NCBI RefSeq assembly: GCF_023055435.1
Contig: NW_025964372.1
Coordinates: 19,406,001 to 19,470,000, forward strand
Direction of reading: 5' to 3'
Source of the DNA: Haliotis rufescens
Taxonomy: Eukaryota
Length of the DNA stretch: 64,000 nt
The translations under genes and the position numbers were made by a program. Positions 31,001 to 52,600 of the stretch are shown piece by piece (within the stretch, counting starts at the first letter, position 1; each line of letters begins with the position of its first letter). The notes beneath the pieces are model-generated. The model ran no database searches, was not told the origin of the DNA, and saw only the letters and a program-made list of their open reading frames with translations.

Positions 31001-32085
31001 CTGTTATCAGCATGATCAGTGAAATACACTTTATCTCTACGAAGCCATAACATTATCTATTTGTTTTAGATATTAACATAAATTGGGAAACTTTTAATTC
31101 CATTTTGCAAATTTCTACTGTCATTTTCTGCAGACATGGGGCTGAATTCAGGCCATTGAGCAGGTCCAGATAAATCTCTTAATAAACAGCAACCGTGACA
31201 GATTAACAATAGACCTTTGAAACAATTGTGTGTTCTTCAGCTTCTTTTGAGTAGTGTATATTCAAAATCGATAGGCTCAGGATATTTATTAGTCTGTCTT
31301 ACAGACCCTGATACAAATATATATATCAAATACAGCCCATGCAAGTCTATAATGTTTGGCAAGTCTAGATTACTGCAGTATCTGAAAATGAAGAGAGTCA
31401 CTGGGCTCCCTTTTATTATATTTTTATTAAGATAACTGAACAACTGTTTTTTCTGTACATGTTCATTTCAGAGACTAGATGTTAGTCTAGATATTTTAGT
31501 CTGTCTCACAGACAATGATACAAATATATATCAAATACAGCCCATGCAAGTCTATAATGTTTGGCAAGTCTAGATTACTGCAGTATCTAAAAATGAAGAG
31601 AGTCACTGGGTTCCCTTTTATTATATTTTTATTAAGATAACTGAACAACTGTTTTTTCTGTACGATATGTTCATTTCAGAGACTAGATGTTAGTCTAGAT
31701 ATTTATCACAACAGAATTGAGACTGAATACGCTGGATTCAGATAAACACACAACATGAACACAAAAGTGTGGCATTCTAGGAAGGAATAAATTGTTGCAA
31801 CTTTCTGTCTTGTCAGGGATGCCAATTATTCGGCCAGTCTGGTGGGTGGCACCAGAGGACATCGTTGCCCAGCGGGTCGACTGTGAGTTCTTGGTGGGGG
31901 ATGCCCTCCTGGTGGCGCCAATACTGGAGAAGGGGGACAGGGAGCGCCAGGTGTACCTTCCAGCTGGGAGCCGGTGGAAGGATAATCTACGACAAAAACA
32001 TTATGATGGCGGACAATGGCTGGAGCATTATCGCGTAGAGCTGATGGAAATTGCAACTTTTGAGCGAGAAAAAACTCCTTTGTGA
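28091..32085 (+). CDS. MYORG: MYORG/KIAA1161-like GH31 type II membrane glycosidase (688 aa, 2 coding exons)
   Basis: Exons 28091-29888 and 31817-32085 (phase 1). N-terminal TM helix; HWYGG, GPVLERYWFSSKG, VDFTNEQA, FVFDGGE, TDRQSSW, GLKSIIP..L..GLLGYPF, ELYVRW, MQFS, PIIRPVWW, LVAPILEKG...VYLP. May be a paralogue rather than the orthologue. Confidence 0.88.
29929..30120 (+). mobile_element. SINE family C remnant at the start of the MYORG intron
   Basis: ggggggtgcacgggtggccctgtcatcaagg...aaacctatgattgtgggtt; accounts for the spurious C-terminus of ORF 28061-29980. Confidence 0.7.
31288..31703. repeat. ~208-bp tandem duplication in the MYORG intron
   Basis: ttagtctgtct...atcaaatacagcccatgcaagtc...gttagtctagatatt occurs twice (about 31288 and 31496). 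Confidence 0.9.
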
Positions 32086-35939: not shown

Positions 35940-37860
35940 ACAGAATCCCCACGGAGAAAAGCATGGGGTACTGGGGACCTACTCTGCCAGGTTATCCCCA
36001 CAGCGAGACCAGCATGGGGTACTGGGGACCTACTGTGCTGGGTATTCCCACTAGGGAGAAAAGCATGGGGTACTGGGGACCTACTGTGCTGGGTAATTCC
36101 ACCAGGGAGACCAGCATGGGGTACTTGGGACCTACTTTGTACTTGGGACCTACTCTGCCTGGTAATCCCCACAGCGAGACCAGCATGGGGTACTGGGGAC
36201 CTACTGTGCTGGGTATTCCCACTAGGGAGACAAGCATGGGGTATTGTGGACCTACTCTGCCAGGTAATCCCACCAGGGAGACCAGCATGAGGTACTGGGG
36301 ACCTACTCTGCCTGGTAATCCCACCAGGGAGACCAGCATGGGGTACTTGGGACCTACTCTGCCAGGTTATCTCCACAGGGAGACCAGCATGGGGTACTGG
36401 GGACCTACTGTGCTGGGTATTCCCACTAGGGAGACAAGCATGGGGTACTGGGGACTTACTTTGCCGGGTAATCCCACCAGGGAGACCAGCATGGGGTACT
36501 GGGGACTTACTTTGCCGGGTAATCCCACCAGGGAGACCAGCATGAGGTACTGGGGACCTACTTTGTACTTGGGACCTACTCTGCCAGGTTATCTCCACAG
36601 GGAGACCAGCGTGGGGTACTGGGGACTTACTTTGCCGGGTAATCCCACCAGGGAGACCAGCATGGGGTACTGGGGACCTTCTCTGCCGGGTAATCCCACA
36701 AGGGAGACCAGCATGGAGTACTGGGGACCAACTCTTCTGGGTAATCCCCACAGGGAGACCAGCATTGGGTACTGGGGGCCTACTTTGTACTTGGGACCTA
36801 CTCTGCCTGGTAATCCCACCAGGGAGACAAGCATGGAGTACTGGGGACCTACTCTGCCTGGTAATCCCCACAGGGAGACCAGCATGGGGTACTTGGGACT
36901 TAATTTGTACTTTGGACCTACTCTGCCTGGTAATCCCACCAGGGAGACAAGCATGGGGTACTGGGGACCTACTCTACCTGGTAATCCCTCCAGGGAGACC
37001 AGCATGGGGTACTGGGGACCTACTTTGTACTTGGGACCTACTCTGCCTGGTAATCCCACCAGGGAGACAAGCATGGGGTACTGGGGGCCTACTTTGTACT
37101 TGGGACCTACTCTGCCTGGTAATCCCACCAGGGAGACAAGCATGGGGTACTGGGGGCCTACTTTGTACTTGGGACCTACTCTGCCTGGTTATCCCACCAG
37201 GGAGACAAGCATGGGGTACTGGGGGCCTACTTTGTACTTGGGACCTACTCTGCCTGGTAATCCCACCAGGGAGACAAGCATGGAGTACTGGGGACCTACT
37301 CTGCCTGGTAATCCCACCGGGGAGACAAGCATGGGGTACTGGGGACCTACTCTGCCAGGTTATCTCCACAGGGAGACCAGCATGGGGTACTGGGGACCTT
37401 CTCTGCCGGGTAATCCCACCAGGGAGACCAGCATGGAGTACTGGGGACCAACTCTTCTGGGTAATCCCCACAGGGAGACCAGCATGGGGTACTGGGGACC
37501 TACTCTGCCAGGATATCCCCACAGGGAGACCAGCATGGGGTATTGTGGACCTTGCCTGTCACATAATCCCCACAGGGAGACAAACATGGGGTACTGGGAA
37601 TCTAGTGTGCCACTTAATCCCTACAGCGAGACAAACATGGGGTACTGGGGACCAACTATTCTGGGTAATCCCCACAGGGAGACCAGCATGGGCTACTGGG
37701 GACCTACTCTGCAAGGTAATCCCCACAGGGAGACAAGCATGGGGTAGTGGGGACCTTGCCTGCCACTTAATCCCTACAGCGAGACAAGCATGGGGTACTT
37801 GGAACCTACTCAGCCACGGAATTCCCACAGGGAGACATGCATGTGATACGTGGGATATAT
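35940..37860. repeat. 51-bp minisatellite (69-bp variant units), about 33 copies
   Basis: Unit GCATGGGGTACTGGGGACCTACTCTGCCTGGTAATCCCACCAGGGAGACCA with an optional 18-bp insert. Gives overlapping repetitive ORFs on both strands. Confidence 0.95.
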
Positions 37861-38119
37861 GAGTGCATAGATTTTAATGGTTCTCAAACAATACCATTCT
37901 AATACTTAAATCGTACAAGACTCAAAGGCATTAGTCACGCGTCTCCAAATATCATTTTTTCCAGATCTACCGCACCTGATGAGCCAGGTATTTGTAGTCA
38001 CATCTCGGGTCTATATATGGACCCCATGTGCTTTTTGGGTGCCTGGTTCCAGAAATAGCAGATAACAGGCTGGGCCTGTCCCACACATGTCCCGCTCCCA
38101 CACCCGGCATTGAACCACC

Positions 38120-41100
38120 ATGGAGGCTTTTCACATACTGTGTCTCGTCATCGGTGAGTTTCTTTGGACTAACATTTAAAAACTGTTAATACTAATTGAA
38201 ATCTTGACAGTCGTGTGGTATGCACTTTCTGTTGTGGAGGGGGTTGGTGGGTTGAAACAATGAACTGAATAAGTGAGCTATTTTATCGACTCCTCGAGCA
38301 ATATATGTCAGTTTTATAAGGGTGTGTCAGCTTATAGTAACAGCATGAACAGACTTGCAGCGAACAACGAGCACGGGTATGGTACTGACTGTACAATGAA
38401 GAGTTAAAGTGGTTCAAATTCGATTAGCGGATCCGTTCACGATGAGGCTACTCTTCAACCTAAATTGCGGAGCCTTATATATACAGTTGGACCTGATATG
38501 TTCCCTGAAGGTATTAATGACTAAAAGTACATACTTACATTAAAGGAGGTAAGTTCTTAATTTAATCATTGAATAATCACAGGACAAGTTCAAGGCCAGA
38601 TACGGTGGTCACGGAAGCTGACGAACCGTGATATAACTGAAATACTGGTTAATTGAGTGACACACCGTGATATAAATGTACTGTTTAATTGAGTTACACA
38701 CCGTGATATAAAGATATATAACTGAAATACTGGTTAATTGAGTGACACACCGTGATATAACTGAAATACTGTTTAACTGAGTGACACACCGTGATATAAC
38801 TGAAATACTGTCTATAGTGAGTGACACACCGGACATAACTGAAATACTGTGTAAAATAACTGACACACCGATATATAACTGAAATACTGCTCAAAGCGAC
38901 TGACACACCGATATATAACTGAAATACTGCTCAAAGCGACTGACACACCGATATATAACTGAAATACTGCTCAAAGCGACTGACACACCGATATATAACT
39001 TATATACTGTTCAAAGCGACTGACACACCGATATATAACTGAAATACTGCTCAAAGCGACTGACACACCGATATATAACTGAAATACTGCTCAAAGCGAC
39101 TGTCACACCGATATATAACTTATATACTGTTCAAAGCGACTGACACACCGATATATAACTGAAATACTGCTCAAAGCGACTGACACACCGATATATAACT
39201 GAAATACTGTTCAAAGCGACTGACACACCGATATATAACTTGAATACTGCTCAAAGCGACTGACACACCGATATATAACTTATATACTGTTCAAAGCGAC
39301 TGACACACCGATATATAACTTGAATACTGCTCAAAGCGACTGACACACCGATATATAACTGAAATACTGCTCAAAGCGACTGACGCACCGATATATAACT
39401 GAAATACTGTTCAAAGCGACTGACACACCGATATATAACTGAAATACTGTTCAAAGCGACTGACACACCGATATATAACTTATATACTGTTCAAAGCGAC
39501 TGACACACCGATATATAACTGAAATACTGCTCAAAGCGACTGACACACCGATATATAACTGAAATACTGTTCAAAGCGACTGACACACCGATATATAACT
39601 TGAATACTGCTCAAAGCGACTGACACACCGATATATAACTGAAATACTGTTCAAAGCGACTGACACACCGATATATAACTTGAATACTGCTCAAAGCGAC
39701 TGACACACCGATATATAACTGAAATACTGCTCAAAGCGACTGACGCACCGATATATAACTGAAATACTGTTCAAAGCGACTGACACACCGATATATAACT
39801 GAAATACTGTTCAAAGCGACTGACACACCGATATATAACTGAAATACTGTTCAAAGCGACTGACACACCGATATATAACTTGAATACTGCTCAAAGCGAC
39901 TGACACACCGATATATAACTGAAATACTGCTCAAAGCGACTGACACACCGATATATAACTGAAATACTGTTCAAAGCGACTGACACACCGATATATAACT
40001 GAAATACTGCTCAAAGCGACTGACACATCGATATATAACTGATATACTGTTCAAAGCGACTGACACACCGATATATAACTTAAATACTGTTCAAAGCGAC
40101 TGACACACCGACATATAACTTAAATATTGTTCAAAACGACTGACACACCGATATATATCGGAAATACTGCTCAAAGCAACCTCGATACTTCACGATTATT
40201 GCTCCCAACGGAAGAACATACTAGTTGAAGCACCTTGGGGTATTGATGATGTATTGAAAACATTGCTCAGTCAAATTAAATTTTAGTGCTCATCATCATC
40301 TGGTACAATAGCATCCCCACTCGATAATGTGGTGATTTATACAATTGTCTGTTTTAGTTGGAGCTGCATTTGTTGTTGCACAGTTTCCGTTTCAACCACC
40401 AAATGGTAAGTATTATTACAGTACTTTTACTTCACCCGAAGGGTTCTGCAGGGTAGCTGTAATTCTCAACACACTGCACATAAACTCGATGCAGTGGTCG
40501 TTCAGAAGGCCTCTCCTTGAAAAAACTGAGTCTAGGCCGATTTGATAAGGCATTCGCTTGATTGACACTCATTTCTATTATTATTTACAGATTAAAATAA
40601 TAGAATTGCAGCAATGAGGGTTTGGGTGATCCTGGCACAGTCAGGCTGGTTTGGCTCATCATCAGCCCAGGGACCTTGCCCTCTCTACACGCAGCCAAGA
40701 CAGCGAAGGGAACTTCTCCCAGGGAGCGCTGCCCAGTCAAACCCAACCGAGAACTTTTCGGAGAATGTGAAGACTCCCCAACACTGCAGCCTTCCGCATT
40801 GTCAGACGGGCTGTATTCCCGGTAGCAAACCCAAGTACTCTTCCAATGTCAGTCAACAGATTGGGAGGTACCAAACTTAAGGCACCGAGAAAAATGGGGC
40901 GTCGGACAACTTGGTACTTGGGATGCAAACGTGACATTTCAAAAGCGAGGTGTGCATATTTGCCATGTTTTACCCGAGTCGTGTCAATCACATTAGTGTC
41001 AAAGAGGGACAGAAAATTCAATAATATAAATTATTTCATTGGATTTATCATAACGGACAATCAGGTTTTTTGGCCTGGATATGTCTGAAACAGTATACGG

Positions 41101-42065
41101 GCTTATTCCAAAGAATTTTTTATTTATCATTTTCCATGACACCCTCTACATATTCTGGGTAGTACCATGGATGGACCACTGAGTCAAAACCACAAGCAAG
41201 GTGAAGACGGTAATAAAAGGATCGAGCCACCCCATCATGTCGCTTAAGATACTGTGTTTGTGCCAAAGCTGGGCATCCACTGACAATGTATTGGACAGAC
41301 TCGTTAAATTCATTGCATAATCTACATTTCATATTTACATTTTGATGCAAAATCACACATTGATGGTTTCGAGTGGGAAGTGACTGGTCTTGACTAGCAA
41401 ACAGAAAGCCTTCTGTTTCGTTTTTCAGACAAGCCGACTTCATCCATGCGAAGGACTCTGCAGGGTTGCTGATCTTCTCAACACACTGCACATAAACTTC
41501 TTCTTCTTCTTCGACTTCTTATTATTTTATTGATGATGAACCGACGAAGAAAGATGGTTAAATAAATATGAAATGAAATATACGATAATTGAAAAATATA
41601 TGAAGGAAGTGAAATCTATCATAGATTATATTTCAGTTCCCTCGCAGTCCTGTCTGACGTGTACCTATCTGAGCGACCCAGCTGACTGCAAGCATTCCAA
41701 GAAGTGTTACCCTGGTGATGTGAGTTACAATGTTACAATGCTGTTACTTACCGATTCAATATGCAAACAATAATGGCATTCATGCACTATGTAATGTATG
41801 AATTTAAATACAGTTAGCCAGACCCGTGAAGATCCGGGATAGAATAGGTCTTTAGCAACCAAAGCTTGCCGTAAGAGATGACTATGCTTGTCGTAAGAGG
41901 CGACTAAGGGGATCGGGTGGTCAGGCTCGCTGACTTGGTTTGTGCGTGTCATCGTATCCCAACTACTTGGATCGATGCTCATGTTATGATTCACTGGGTT
42001 GTCTGGTCCAGACTCGATTATTTACAGACCGCCGTCATATAGCAAGAATATTGCAGAGTGCGGCG

Positions 42066-42098
<33 letters not shown>

Positions 42099-44940
42099 TA
42101 CAGTTAACCTTTTATCCCATATAACTAAGGTTCTCTTTTTATATCGCGGTTTAAGACCATCAGATCCAAAACTTTATTTTTAATTTAAACAAACCAACAA
42201 ACAAACAAACAAATACATACATACAAATAAATAAATAAGGTATGATAAGGAGGGTAATGTAAAAATAGTAGAGACAATTATGTAGTACCACCTTCCGATT
42301 CGTAATCTCATTCACTTATGTTTGGTAGAAGAGCAGATTCTTGAAATGTATATTTTAGTTCAAATACACTAAACTACGGTTATAACGAACACGCTTATAA
42401 CGAACTACGGTTATAACGAACTATAAATAGTAGTCCCTTTGAGTTCGTTATAACCGTAGTTTACTGTATTTAAATGTATTTATCACATGCCTACCGTGCA
42501 TACGACTCTGTCTCTATGTTTCAGTCCTGTTTCCTTGGCGAAGTACACGAGGCAGACAATGAGACCTACTACATCCAGTATTGCTACCCTGAACCTGTAA
42601 GTCAAAATATATTTTGTCTCAGGCAATAATATGTGTCTTGCAAAATCACGCCAGCAAAATGATGAAGCATGATATTTTACCAAGGTATTGTGTATATTCC
42701 CACCTATTGTGGAATGTGTGGTAGTATCATTTAAAAGCAACTTCGTCTTTAAATCCAGGAGCCTCGGATTATATCGGAAAAAACACATTTGTCCCAGAAA
42801 ATGCTTGAAAAAACTCAAACTGTTGCAATGAAAAGGAATTGTCTGCCACAAAAATACGGAATTTAAATAATATGTATATTTAAGCTCATAGCTTAGGTGA
42901 AAAATATCCTCTCTCCAGACAAAATCCCGGCGCCGTTAAACTCACTCACTGACCCAAAATTCACTGTAACGTAGCCCTGGAACCTGATTTGAATTTCAAT
43001 AATAAAGCAGTACATACATAATCAGTTACAGCAAGCAAAATAATGATAAATGGGCAAGTGATGTACATGGCGTGATACAAACAACATCTAATAATGGTGC
43101 CTTCGGCGAGAAAGCTTAAGTATGTAATTTCTAGAAACAAACGTTGTTGAACATACACCAAATGTATTTCGTCCTATTCGGGAATACGTATCTGAAATTT
43201 CAGTTGGTTGGTCTGTAGTAATAACTGATAGACTAGAAACGAAACAGTTAGAAACAGCGAGGGTGGCTACGTATCTTCCAACATTTTCCAAAGCCAGTTA
43301 ACATTATGAGACAAGATGTTTACGTTAAGCATTAGACACAGACAGAAAAAAGCTTTGCACATTCTACAAAACTATTCATTGCACCAAGATTATCTTCATG
43401 CCTTAGCTCCTTAGACAATTGAAACTTTCATTGATTGTAAACTACGAACCAAATTTAATCGTTCAATCCTCAGATTCAGAACAATAACTGTACAAAAATC
43501 CTTCATTTATGTTAACAGCGTCGTGTGGAATCAGGGGGACACGGGCGGCCCAGTCGTCTAAGGCGCCGCGATTCGCTGTGCAGAGTTGCGTCCCTTTGGC
43601 ACGCCAGAAACCTATGATTGTGGGTTCGAATCCCGGTTCGCCCCGATTATGTTTCTAGGTTTGACAGCACCATACCCGTGCTCGTGGGTTTCACCGACGT
43701 GGTTAACGTCCGAGTCCTGCATCACTTCAAGCTTTCCTCCCACATTAAGCTGACACGCCGCGACATAACTGGAATACTGTTAAAAGCGGCGTTAAACCCA
43801 AACCCAATCAGAAGTAAGAGGAGCAAGTACATTACAAGTATTCAAAGAGAACATAAGTCAGAAACAAAGCTCTATGCCTTGTTTTTACCCGTCAGGAAAC
43901 CGTTAACTTTACACGCAAGACTTCTTAACGCTGACGTTTTCAAGGCAAATCTTGTTAAATTTGACTGTAATTGTGAATCAGAATCTGAAAATGTTTCCTC
44001 GAGTGTCGCAATAACATTATATCGCTATAGCGTTTTCCGAATTTGGCATAAAATGTGGTCTTTATACCATTCTATTTTGCGACCCAACATGGATGACAGT
44101 GTCAATGAATTCCAGGTAAATAGTTATAGTTTATCGACTAAAGGATTTAAATAGTTCATGGGTTTGTCTCCAAATATGTTTGTTGAAAATAATACTAATG
44201 TTTGCATATACTGATCTTTTGGACAAATTGTACTTTTAAAGAAAGGGCGAGATTGGCCCCTGGAGCTTTTCCCAATCCTATTAACTGTATTCAATCAAAA
44301 AATTATGTACAACATAACGAGTGTCACGTCTCCAGATCAGTTGTAAATCATTGTTGTCTGACACAGCCTCTGTAAACCTTTACATTCCAACCAATGGCGA
44401 CCGACGTAACATCCCCATTGGTAAATCATCGTGTTCTAACACAGCCTATGTAAACCTTTACATTTCAACCAATGGCGACCGACGTAACATCCCTGTTTGT
44501 AAATCATCGTGTTCTGACACAGCCTATGTGAACCTTTACATTTCAACCAATGGCGACCGACGTAACATCCCTGTTTGTAAATCATCGTGTTCTGACACAG
44601 CCTCTGTAAACCTTTACATTTCAACCAATGGCGACCGACGTAACATCCCTGTTTGTAAATCATCGTGTTCTGACACAGCCTATGTAAACCTTTACATTTC
44701 AACCAATGGCGACCGACGTAACATCCCTGTTTGTAAATCATCATGTTCTGACACAGCCTATGTGAACCTTTACTTTTCAACCAATAGCAACCGAGCTAAC
44801 ATCCCTGTTTCTTGCTGCAGGGCTGTTTACAGATGAAGAGTCTGGTCGAGCAGGGGAACAACGAGCTCCGCGGCTACCACTTCAACTGGATCTCCTGCTG
44901 CAACACCGACGACTGCAACAACATGATACCTCAACCCTAG
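38120..44940 (+). CDS. Secreted Ly6/uPAR (three-finger, LU-domain) protein, 118 aa, 5 exons
   Basis: Exons 38120-38153 (ccaccATGG), 40358-40405, 41637-41719, 42525-42596 and 44821-44940; GT-AG, phases 1,1,0,0, 357 nt. Protein MEAFHILCLVIVGAAFVVA-QFPFQPPNVPSQSCLTCTYLSDPADCKHSKKCYPGDSCFLGEVHEADNETYYIQYCYPEPGCLQMKSLVEQGNNELRGYHFNWISCCNTDDCNNMIPQP. Signal peptide, 10 Cys in the mature part, CCxxxxCN. TATA-like site at 38012, AATAAA at 45090. Confidence 0.88.
38625..40180. repeat. 40-bp satellite, about 38 copies, in intron 1 of the three-finger gene
   Basis: Unit TGACACACCGATATATAACTGAAATACTGCTCAAAGCGAC; the left-hand units are more diverged. Confidence 0.97.
40430..41498 (-). mobile_element. 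R4/Dong-clade (RLE) non-LTR retrotransposon 3' fragment(s)
   Basis: ETEGFLFASQDQSLPTRNH, CRLC...ESVQYIVSGCPALAQTQYLKRHD (CCHC-type region), C-terminal RKAAVLGSLHILRKVL; frameshifted. Confidence 0.75.
41821..42095 (+). mobile_element. Full-length family B SINE-like element (no tRNA head), ~15-bp TSD
   Basis: TSD AAATACAGTTA(G/A)CC(A/T) at 41806-41820 and 42096-42110. Starts GACCCGTGAAGATCCGGG and ends (CAAT)n. Confidence 0.9.
42367..42466. mobile_element. 100-bp pogo/Tc1-mariner-type MITE
   Basis: TIR CA(C/G)TAAACTACGGTTATAACGAAC, TA on both flanks, internal repeats of TTATAACGAAC. Confidence 0.8.
42600..43330 (-). pseudogene. Possible highly decayed Harbinger/PIF transposase remnant
   Basis: Fragmentary motifs in the expected order: GRYVATLA, RIGRNT, HAMYITCP, FIIILLAVTD, FVADNSFSL. 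Many frameshifts. Confidence 0.4.
43535..43808 (+). mobile_element. SINE family C, best-preserved copy
   Basis: tRNA-Leu-like GGCCCAGTCGTCTAAGGCGC, B box GGTTCGAATCCC, tail GCTGACACGCCGCGACATAACTGGAATACTGTTAAAAGCGGCGTTAAACCC. Confidence 0.88.
44338..44812. repeat. 78-bp minisatellite, 6 copies, abutting the last acceptor of the three-finger gene
   Basis: gtaaatcat recurs at 44343, 44421 and 44499. Confidence 0.95.
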
Positions 44941-46534
44941 ACGCTAGTGGTCACGTTTACATTGCATGGCATGTTCATCTTAGTTCGTTATATGTCGTCA
45001 GCCATTTTGTGCTTTTTGTGTGTAACTTTAATGTATTTTCAAATTTCAGTTGTTCGGTTTGGTTAAGATATTAAAAGAGATTTCAACAAAATAAACGTTA
45101 TCTAATCCCTCATGCTCAAAGAATATATTGTTTGTCGAAATCGCCCTTTTTTTATAACGAAACAGTTCCCACCGTGTGTACAAGTAATTTTTCATCCCAA
45201 ACTGGCTCCCACAGGAGATATCGCTTGGGTGAGATCAAGCGATTTATAACTTGTCCGTGAAGAGATCACCCGTTTAATAAACATACAGCTGTATTACACA
45301 TCGTGTAATACCAAAACGCGTGCTTTTGTACTCTTTTGAAACCTACCAACATCCCTTGGCTTATTCAACGACATTGCGTGTGGAGATGATAGATCACTGA
45401 GAGGAGCTTATGCACGTTCGATTACCCCAGCAACCTTGTTGCTAGGCTGACGTCACATGGCATTGTTTCGTCGATGGATCTTGAAACAAAATTCCAGAAA
45501 TTACGTCATCGGGTATTGTGACGTGATTGTAAACTTTGATCGCTCGTAAGTATATGATGACAGTTGTCTGTTGGGCATCCAGTTCTTCTTCAAACAGATG
45601 CAAAGGCAAAGAGTTGTCTCCTAACCAAGCGGATTAGGTCGCGATCTTCGCGTCCTGACGTCACACGAGGCCGTCCAGACCTTGGAAGGTCCTTTACCTC
45701 ATGCCTTTGTCGATGTTTTCAGGGAACGTTTACTTTTACCTTGATATCGCTTTTATTATTATTATTATCCACCAGCCTAAATAACATTATCTTCCGTAAA
45801 AAAAATTATATTAAGAACTAAGAGGAGCATTACATTCAGGAAAGTACGTATTAGACAATTCCCATGAATCTAAATTCGTTTCTTCTTACCACAGTATTGA
45901 ATTACTGGCATACTTTCATGAAACTTTATGTCACTATACACTTTTGAAAGTGTGAAAACGATTTGAAACAACCACTAGAACCATTTAAGTAACAAACCAT
46001 ATCATGATGTAAACAGTTTCTGAGAGAATATATGGAACTGCATCTTCCCGAGGCAAGGGAGTTAACTATGAAAGTCCAGTTTCTACCCTTGCCGAACTAG
46101 GCTGGTATTATGGCGTTACATTTTGGCTGGACTAACGAGTCTATGCATAGTCCAATCAAAATCGCGAACCGACATCGAAATCAGGTTCGTAAACTGTCAT
46201 GCAGACTTCGGTCGATTGCAGTCTTTTCAAGTTTTTAATCAAGGTGCTCACATGATTTGATGCACTTCGCGATGTAAGACCCGTTTTATCACAATATAGA
46301 TCTTGATTGTCGATCAGATCGTCTTGACTAGGCGCCGCCTTTTTGTACTCATTGTTTACATTGCGGAAGTAGGCTAGGGTAGAAAATAGGTCACAGCCTC
46401 GCTTCGATTAGGGAATTCCCTTTTCGCTTTTCGACTAACGGTTATACTAACTTATAGTCCGGGAACAAACATTTTGAATATGCCTACCAAGTAGAGGCTA
46501 GTTGTACGCAGCAACATTTACTGTCAGTATTGTC

Positions 46535-49651: not shown

Positions 49652-52600
49652 TCACGATGACTGAGCACAATTCAATTGCCACGGTTTCCGTTTATTCGGA
49701 ACAATATTTTCAGCGAATGTCAGATTTGGAAACAAGGAGATGGCATTAGCAATTATCTTTGAAAGACCTTGTTTTACCTTGTACCATACAATCTCTGCAA
49801 CCAGTATCAGGAAACTGCAGATCAGCCCAATTCCCACAGCAAAGAACATACTCTGGATCTTGGTGAGTGACACAGCTTTAGGGAAACTCTCTACTGGACA
49901 TTTGACCTTCGGGGCAGACTGAAGCCATTCTTGAAAGGTACGCTGCAGGATACCACTGTCGCGTAGATGATACATCCTGGCAGTGACAATGATTTACATA
50001 GGATTACATCTCGAGGATTACCAAACAAAAGAACGCTAACGGTCTAATGGTACAATGCAAAGCGTTGTCAAAATACACAGAAATCATCAGATGAAAACAG
50101 GGATTCTATTTATTGATGAAAAAGAAAATGACTTGACTATCGTTTTATAGGGGCAGTCAGATGGTACGACTAGTTTATTGCATCGGGTCAACAGCTATTC
50201 CAAGCCTTGTAATATTTACATATCCATTTTACAACGATATGGCAAACCCTATAAATAGAGTAAATGTGTAAAATAGTATAAATTGTCAGACCGGTAAATA
50301 TTCATAATTTTAAATGAGGAAACGTCAAAATTAAACGTTAATGCAAGGGAATACTTCTGTGACAATTTGAAAGTAAATTCTCATTTTAATTTCGCATGGT
50401 GCGATGAGGTAATTAATTAAGTATTATTTAATTATTAATTAAATAAGTATTATGTACACTCATTATATTCGTCAATCTATTAAGTGAAGAATGATCGATT
50501 CAGACCTACGTGTTTTCCAGATCCTGTTTGAAAGGAGAAGACTTTGGAAGATGGAAGGCTGTGTAGGAATGTCCAAATTTAGTGTCGAGTACTTGTAATT
50601 TGCAATCAGCATAGCTTAAAGGGACCATTACTGTGCCCGAGATGAAAGCGTATTTTCCCTCATGGACTCTTTGCAGGTGCTTGGTGATGTTGATACCGAG
50701 TACGTCAGGATCTGTGACCGATAAGTCCCGGACTCGTTGTACGACACCCTTGATATCTGATTGCTTAGTATTCTGAAAATCATTGTGGAGTGGTCACATG
50801 TCTTAACACTAATCTAAATCTCTTGTAATGCAAATGTACAATAATGTACTTTTATGTATGTACAATAATTCGAACTGCGTTGCACATACCTATGCCTTGA
50901 ACATTGCATGTAATCTATGTTCTTATGGGAAACAATCACGTGTATAGTGTAGACCTGTCAACCGTTCCAATCGTATCAAGATGATCCATTTTCAAGCCCC
51001 GTTTTTAATGAGATATTGTAGGTATTTGTCATCCAACACTATATTAAATATACCATGTACATCGACAGAACTGAAGCGAAATGGAAATCCTATTCGTCTA
51101 CAGAATGAAGACACAGGTGACATGGATTTCAGCTTCAAGCAAGTTGATAAGGGCACTAGCACATGTACTGACCGTGAAGACCCGTGAAGAGAATAGGTCT
51201 TCAGAAACCCATGATTGCTGTAAGAAGCGACTAATGGGACCGGATGGTCGGGCTCGGTGACTTGGTTGACGCATGTCAAATAGTGGATTGCCTGGTCCAG
51301 ACCGCCGCGATATATACTAGCCACATAATGAAACTGTGCACGGAGAAAATATATTCTGGATTGAAATACAACACAGCAAGAACAAAATGATGCAGACGCT
51401 GTAGCAGCTGAATGATCGGACCATAAGAAAATGTCAACGGGACCTGAACAACAACTGTTACGATGACGTCAGAAGATCAAAATGGAGTAGGGGGTCATAC
51501 GACAAAGTCACAAAATCAATAACGGGTATGGCCACCCTGTGCGTGAATCACAGCAGTGCATCGCCGACGCATGGAGTCCACCAAATGGGCATGGAAGGCC
51601 TGGGGAATGGCCTGCCATATCCTTCTCAAATCCTGTGCCAAGTCACGGACGTTATCTGGAGGATGTGGAAGACGACGCAGACGGCGCTCCATTTCATCCC
51701 ACACAGGCTCTATTGGGGAGAGATCTTGAGAAATTGCAGGCCATGGCAGTAACATGACATTGTTATGGTGAAGGAAATCCATTGCGACCCTAGCCGTGTG
51801 AGGACGAGCGTTGTCCTGTTGAAATGTCAATCCCGGGCTATGACGTTGCAGGAAAGGAATGACCACAGGCCTCAGAATCTGATCTCTGTAGCCAACACCG
51901 GTGAGATTGCCCTGAACAACCACCAAAGGGGTTCGGTGCCGTGCTGTTATCCAACCCCAAATAATCACAGAGCCACCTCCAAAACGATTCCTCTCCACAA
52001 TACAGTTGCGTGCATAACGTTCTCCCAAACGCCGGTAGACACGTTGGCGCCCGTCACTGTGGGAAATGTTGAACCTCGATTCATCTGCAAAGACAACATT
52101 TCTCCACCATATTCGAGGTTGGCGAACATGATTTCGACACCATCTTAGACGGTTGACTCGATGACGGTGTGTCAGGATGGGAGGTATGGCAGGGCGTCGT
52201 GGTCGAATCCCGTACTGACGTAAACGATTCCTGACAGTGTTGGGATGGATACGGCGCAGTCCAGGAATTGTCTGGGACGTCGTTCCTGCCGTTTGGAACC
52301 TGTGTCGGAGATGTGTAACCCGAATCCATCTGTCCTGTCTTGGCGTCGTTACTCGGGGACGTCCTGAACGTGGGTGGTCGGCAACGTGATTAGTGTTCTG
52401 ATAACGCCTCACCAATGCCGATATCGTGTTACGATGGCATTGGACATGTGTTGCCACCTGTTGTTGCCTCATTCCCGCTCGGATCATTCCAATGGCTTCA
52501 TGACGCTGTGCAGCTGTCAATCTTGGCATGATTTGCTTGTGATATGCTTGTGTCTGCGCCTGAGAAGTTTTGAATTTTTGAATGACCACAGATCACGCTT

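Follow-up and report, generated by a model that had tools for sequence, protein, structure and literature searches.

[quoted passage not shown] The archetypal LU gene consists of a signal exon and two domain exons, the latter flanked by phase-1 introns and separated by an inner intron that falls at the loop-2 tip; this arrangement is typical rather than obligatory (PMC6600238). Proteins with a single LU domain are mostly GPI-anchored (PMC9819746), and three-finger toxins proper have been described as exclusive to caenophidian snake venoms (PMC10421932). Among molluscs, a survey of 25 genomes counted 2086 three-finger genes (about 83 per genome), including secreted single-domain forms of unknown function, and its main text names no Haliotis genome (PMC13719153). 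The starfish LU protein Lystar5 resides at the surface of cells, where it has been proposed to bind an integrin (PMC11595613); nothing comparable is known for the abalone protein described below.

The gene described here, one more mollusc LU gene beside those of the survey, was found in a 64,000-nucleotide stretch of Haliotis rufescens DNA (hereafter the window, meaning the whole stretch that was analysed). Taken as a whole, the best explanation of the evidence, and a very likely one, is a transcribed five-exon abalone gene that encodes a secreted 118-aa precursor of the Ly6/uPAR type, and we rate its product as an ordinary member of a known and very common family. In common with the closest known secreted LU proteins it has a signal peptide, the ten ancestral cysteines and CCxxxxCN in one LU domain, an end soon after CN without a GPI signal, and a phase-1 intron before the domain exons. 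It is unlike them in that no sequence orthology is detectable, in that the domain is interrupted by two phase-0 introns at finger boundaries rather than by a single intron at the loop-2 tip, and in that an extra small exon supplies a proline-rich N-terminus. Table 1 gives the coordinates of the gene and of the features within and around it.

Table 1. Features of the abalone LU gene and its introns (positions in the window)
Feature	Position	Strand or location	Description
TATA-like motif	38012..38018	+	regex; ~100 nt 5' of ATG
Short upstream open frame	38087..38113	+	ATG, 7 codons, TGA; same frame as main ATG
Exon 1, coding part	38120..38153	+	34 nt; start codon in ACCATGG context; first 11 signal-peptide codons
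40-bp satellite	38713..40177	intron 1	36.7 copies, 93% matches
Exon 2	40358..40405	+	48 nt; end of signal peptide (VVA/Q) and proline-rich N-terminal stretch; phase-1 donor
123-aa open frame	41123-41491	-	intron 2; weak zf-RVT match (E 0.003)
Exon 3	41637..41719	+	83 nt; cysteines 1-4 (finger I); phase-0 donor
Exon 4	42525..42596	+	72 nt; cysteines 5-6 (finger II hairpin); N67-E-T sequon; phase-0 donor
78-bp tandem repeat	44341..44810	intron 4	6 copies, 94% matches
Exon 5, coding part	44821..44940	+	120 nt including TAG; cysteines 7-10
3' untranslated region	44941..45115	+	AATAAA at 45090-45095

The preliminary description of this DNA had drawn five in-phase exons encoding 118 aa, and this model was borne out to the base, in its borders, its phases and its piecewise translation. 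All four introns (4/4) run from GT to AG with pyrimidine-rich acceptors, in phases 1, 1, 0 and 0, the donor of exon 1 being gtgagt in phase 1, and the five exons translated piece by piece from the window total 357 nt, or 118 codons and a stop, in phase. Exon 5 holds finger III, the CCNTDDCN knot and six further residues before TAG, this knot (44896-44919) being the only CCxxxxCN found in the window in six frames. The plan of the exons departs from the archetype: the signal peptide is spread over two exons, the introns preceding the domain are in phase 1, and two phase-0 introns interrupt the LU domain, one immediately ahead of Cys5 and the other immediately ahead of Cys7. Because of the position of these two introns, exons 3, 4 and 5 encode one finger each. 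This difference from the archetype is modest but real.

At the 5' end, the TATA-like motif is a possible core promoter candidate. The TGA of the short upstream frame sits 6 nt 5' of the main ATG, and the RefSeq model of H. asinina begins 12 codons 5' of the shared Met, perhaps from an equivalent upstream ATG without the stop. Within the introns, the last and altered copy of the 78-bp repeat stops 10 nt before the exon-5 acceptor and contributes part of its pyrimidine tract, so that the exon-5 splice site lies at the edge of the repeat array. The 123-aa open frame of intron 2 represents the zinc-finger end left by a decayed non-LTR retrotransposon (reverse-transcriptase debris). Two interspersed repeats are also intronic, at 41821-42095 (a SINE-like family) and 43535-43801 (other copies of which go on with (CTCA)n past 43801). 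Their summed word depths reach about 1e5 or more in the transcript-like sequencing runs described below, and this depth comes from thousands of diverged contigs. ARAGORN found no tRNA in the introns, including both of these repeats.

Three further features of the window lie outside the gene. Positions 36011-37843 are occupied by a minisatellite with a GC content of 55% and a unit of 51 bp (periods of 69 and 120 bp can also be read), which ends about 280 bp 5' of the gene's ATG. Its period is a multiple of three, and several open frames are present, such as a 594-aa ORF at 35963-37747 (+), which is probably non-coding as it has no Pfam match. Further upstream, an open frame at 31792-32082 (+) has a match to PF21365, the C-terminal domain of family 31 glycoside hydrolases (E 1.5e-19), and is probably the last exon of an alpha-glucosidase-like gene. 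Downstream, 51516-52589 (-) is an intact 357-aa ORF for a Tc1/mariner-type transposase (DDE_3 and HTH_Tnp_Tc3_2).

The same description had called the gene hidden, and easily missed by annotation. This is not the case, as RefSeq already holds a matching H. rufescens protein and orthologues from two other abalones. A phmmer search of 1.84 billion representatives with exon 5 (39 aa) retrieved a 118-aa protein (E 5e-21) whose cluster has three members, each named 'uncharacterized protein': XP_046366965.2 from Haliotis rufescens (LOC124142499, hereafter P0004), XP_071096368.1 from Haliotis cracherodii and XP_067660898.1 from H. asinina. In a tblastn search of the window these proteins fall on all five exons. 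P0004 agrees at every residue with the translations of the five exons, at both split Val codons as well as over the 11 residues of exon 1 (100% match over residues 1-11), and it served as the reference for all whole-protein analyses, being identical to the product of the window. The orthologue of H. cracherodii has 1 difference and that of H. asinina is 86% identical; over the mature protein H. cracherodii does not differ from H. rufescens, and H. asinina is 88% identical, with differences at 12/99 positions, nearly all of them conservative. No paralogue of exon 5 or of P0004 was found in the 1.33-Gb assembly, and the gene is single-copy. A word search with the whole protein returned only its own cluster, and a search of the literature for LOC124142499, or for abalone together with Ly6/uPAR, found nothing specific.

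To follow the transcription and splicing of the gene, exon 5 with its 3' flank was used as a query against sequencing runs; 20 runs were listed, with five species labels and from eight studies. Four of these were compared with positions 40300-46200 of the window: X1 and X2 (organism A, two studies), X9 (organism B) and X15 (organism E). The joints 41719/42525 and 42596/44821 are present in contigs of X1, X2 and X9, and the joint 40405/41637 in contigs of X1 and X9. Spliced contigs across junctions 2-3, 3-4 and 4-5 thus come from three runs, two species labels and three studies. The same three runs have zero depth in the unique intron bins (42861-43451 and 43846-44633). In X15, 30/30 bins are covered, the borders of exons 3, 4 and 5 are spanned unspliced, and no spliced joint was seen over 40300-46200. 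By these features, X1, X2 and X9 resemble transcriptomes, and X15 resembles genomic DNA. Since the joints occur in the transcript-like runs and X15 is unspliced, the spliced form would be RNA and not a processed DNA copy.

Of the four junctions of the preliminary description, the last three are therefore found directly in transcript-like contigs, and the first is supported indirectly. On the exon-2 side of the joint 40405/41637 there are exactly 48 letters, which fits an acceptor at 40358, and the X1 contig carries 66 further letters 5' of exon 2, which would be exon 1 (34 nt) and a 32-nt leader; these letters, along with the public protein models, indirectly support the junction of exons 1 and 2 (38153/40358). 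At the other end, the contigs continue past TAG into the 3' untranslated region, ending at 45108 (X9), 45115 (X2) and 45221 (X1), the first two of these ends lying 13-20 nt 3' of AATAAA. It is thus confirmed that the five exons form a real, transcribed and spliced gene, and are more than a product of chance.

The precursor would consist of a 19-residue signal peptide, a 13-residue proline-rich stretch and one LU domain of about 80 residues. Ten cysteines follow the signal peptide in the arrangement C-2-C-8-C-5-C-5-C-17-C-5-C-23-CC-4-CN, which fits the published consensus (PMC6600238). From C33 to C111 there are 79 residues, with a cysteine spacing of 2-8-5-5-17-5-23-0-4 that is within the LU definition, and the tenth cysteine is followed by N112-N-M, a non-sequon, as the C-terminal motif of the family requires. 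Against the Pfam profile UPAR_LY6 (PF00021), P0004 scores 21.9 bits (E 2.4e-4, profile positions 4-81 of 82), or 2.9 bits under the cut-off of 24.8 bits, and P0005, the orthologue from H. asinina, exceeds this cut-off with 26.9 bits. The next Pfam matches of P0004 are Toxin_TOLIP and then Activin_recp, which we take to form one Pfam clan with UPAR_LY6. On Toxin_TOLIP (PF00087, cut-off 21.2 bits) P0004 scores 18.0 bits and P0005 scores 16.7 bits, both under the cut-off, and P0004 has no match to QVR (PF17064) at E<=10. The single ten-cysteine domain of Ly6/uPAR type proposed in the preliminary description is thus upheld, by the cysteine pattern, by the Pfam matches within the LU clan and by an orthologue over the cut-off. 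As for the three profiles against which that description had proposed to set the protein, UPAR_LY6 is positive for the H. asinina orthologue, the H. rufescens protein staying at the sub-threshold score given above, and Toxin_TOLIP and QVR are both negative.

Searches with parts of the gene were less sensitive. Single exons gave no Pfam matches, as they are too short, and a six-frame scan of the whole genome with PF00021 missed this gene and found only sub-threshold matches elsewhere; because the gene was missed, such an exon-wise profile search must be regarded as insensitive. Two of the UPAR_LY6 matches elsewhere (L005 and L006, 17.5 bits each) stand 200 bp apart at G000:C594:42793921-42794311, within extended open frames of 251 and 425 aa, 23 Mb further on the same chromosome, and may belong to one gene with multiple LU domains.

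Further leads come from comparisons beyond profiles. In a search with language-model features, the ten best matches having a family are all LU proteins (10/10), the top one being CD59-like (0.88, 175 shared features); the same search with exon 5 alone (0.81) was uninformative. CD59-like GPI-anchored LU proteins (PF25152/PF00021) are therefore the nearest feature cluster and have the same ten-cysteine pattern. Low-confidence models of the abalone protein open finger III with a helix, as is also the case in CD59. Unlike these proteins, the abalone protein is without a GPI signal; the similarity is a lead only and implies no complement-type function. In the sequence searches, the only relatives found outside abalone are proteins with multiple LU domains from marine plankton metatranscriptomes (P0003, P0007, P0008 and P0010); a word search that started from an alignment returned nothing but such proteins. 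One of them matches exon 5 alone at E 1.5e-4, and as a group they align with the abalone protein in hhalign at E 2.2e-4. They share with it the ending ...W-x-x-CC-D/N-x-D-x-CNN-x-x-P, and several of them have UPAR_LY6 or QVR Pfam matches; they differ in having two to four tandem LU domains with Thr/Glu-rich linkers, and the identity, about 25-38%, is limited to the C-terminal half. Another match of exon 5, the second in rank (P0002, E 1.6e-12, in six stretches), is a bacterial type IX secretion protein with SprB repeats and was rejected as a repeat artefact.

That the protein might be a secreted cysteine-rich protein of another fold, such as a von Willebrand C-like domain or a novel knot, with an LU likeness in its cysteine spacing only, seems improbable. 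Its own Pfam score is, as noted, under the cut-off, and structure prediction contributes no LU match: AlphaFold2 models from alignments of 4 and 6 rows have a confidence (pLDDT 46.6 and 50.3) too low to speak for or against the three-finger fold, Foldseek found nothing in the PDB at E<=0.001, and in VIA-align wide the best Z was 3.2, with no LU chain found. Among PDB sequences, phmmer gave a weak match of the whole protein to the VWC domain of Crossveinless-2 (E 0.05), and a search with exon 5 a weak one to long neurotoxin 1 (E 1.5); a profile of the orthologues found nothing among the sequences of solved structures. The Crossveinless-2 match, however, extends over only 35 residues and was rejected as a coincidence of cysteine spacing; the VWC signature, which we take to be CxxCxC ... 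CCxxC, is absent from the abalone protein. The three best Pfam matches each span their full profile, the orthologue from H. asinina scores over the cut-off of UPAR_LY6, the top feature-based matches are all LU families, and the complete ten-cysteine LU signature with CCxxxxCN is present, all of which argues for the LU domain.

Within this Ly6/uPAR reading, the preliminary description had also called the protein toxin-like, for which nothing was found beyond resemblance at the level of the superfamily: Toxin_TOLIP is under its cut-off and the mature protein is conserved in three abalones. The likeness to snake three-finger toxins lies in their common superfamily, in the C-terminal CC-TDDCN, which resembles that of long neurotoxin 1, and in the cysteines of the 2-3 disulfide, which the abalone protein keeps as basal-type snake toxins do. 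It is unlike them (PF00087) in its profile score, in its non-snake host, in a sequence that is conserved rather than diversifying, and in the greater length of its mature chain (99 aa). It is accordingly very improbable that the protein is a toxin used in defence or attack, or is secreted as an antimicrobial, although it is small, secreted, disulfide-rich and of the right superfamily. Secreted invertebrate three-finger proteins have been speculated to be toxins, antimicrobials, repellents or attractants (PMC13719153); against this, three-finger toxins proper have been described as confined to caenophidian snake venoms (PMC10421932). The abalone gene is moreover single-copy, with no paralogue found in the genome or the window, and its mature product is invariant in two abalones and little changed in the third. 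Genes for venoms and for arms races usually expand and diverge fast. Abalone are also, to our knowledge, grazers without a venom apparatus.

The probable secretion of the LU protein follows from its two ends. Hydropathy analysis of the precursor shows a single strongly hydrophobic stretch, residues 6-18 (Kyte-Doolittle maximum 3.2 at residues 6-14), followed by V-V-A/Q, and under the -3/-1 rule residues 1-19 are predicted to form a signal peptide of the classical type, in agreement with the signal peptide of the preliminary description. The mature chain would then have 99 aa, a mass of about 11.3 kDa and an acidic pI of 4.6, and would begin with the proline-rich stretch. Its N67 lies in a conserved sequon, which reads NGT in H. 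asinina and NET in the other two species, and is probably N-glycosylated on the predicted tip of finger II, where the hairpin strands predicted in the low-confidence model (56-63 and 69-75) place the sequon at the turn. After CN come only six residues, NMIPQP, the C-terminal 15 residues as a whole are polar in 3/3 species (mean hydropathy -0.8), and the RefSeq models of the three species end in ...CNN-x-x-PQP (3/3). The polar tail, the transcripts that include the stop and the absence of a QVR match indicate that the main product has no GPI or membrane tail, and a protein of this kind is most likely secreted. The same claim had been made in the preliminary description, and the six polar residues after CN in three species, with contigs that include the stop, bear it out. 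By its predicted signal peptide, and with neither a C-terminal GPI signal nor a membrane helix predicted, the protein would join the secreted LU subgroup (SLURP/PATE-like). It is unlike quiver/sleepless (PF17064) in having neither a QVR match nor a hydrophobic tail.

Least probable of all is a main product tethered to the membrane (GPI or transmembrane) through an alternative last exon, as in Lynx- or quiver-type proteins, for although single-LU proteins are mostly GPI-anchored (PMC9819746), three independent contigs continue out of exon 5 and past TAG to reach the 3' untranslated region, the RefSeq models of three species share the ending given above, the QVR profile is not matched, and an alternative last exon with a GPI signal, which the preliminary description had named as one observation that would overturn its reading, was looked for in the contigs of X1, X2 and X9 (contigs from which rare isoforms drop out) with no well-supported joint leaving exon 5.

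For the secreted LU protein, then, with its domain ending six residues past CCxxxxCN and in the presumed lack of a GPI signal or membrane helix, the mature chain would leave the cell. By analogy with other secreted LU proteins, it would act extracellularly, its finger loops engaging a membrane receptor at the ectodomain. Precedent favours a Cys-loop receptor, nicotinic or other, as the target, although this remains a doubtful one. The conserved sequence and the single copy favour a conserved endogenous role over that of a fast-evolving toxin, pheromone or gamete-recognition protein, and an endogenous secreted ligand seems likelier than a toxin. More specifically, this conserved secreted LU protein might be restricted to abalone and might, as a soluble factor of the animal's own, modulate a receptor of neurons or epithelia, a proposal that we regard as unlikely in this precise form.

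The entries named 'uncharacterized protein' in three abalone RefSeq sets can now be labelled as a secreted Ly6/uPAR-domain protein, which matters little beyond annotation. The plan of one finger per exon, with phase-0 inner introns, adds one observation on the architecture of LU genes in animals other than vertebrates. If a receptor target were found, the protein would be among the very few functionally defined three-finger proteins of molluscs, and if the receptor-modulator reading is true, it would be a molluscan functional counterpart of SLURP and Lynx that arose independently of the vertebrate genes.
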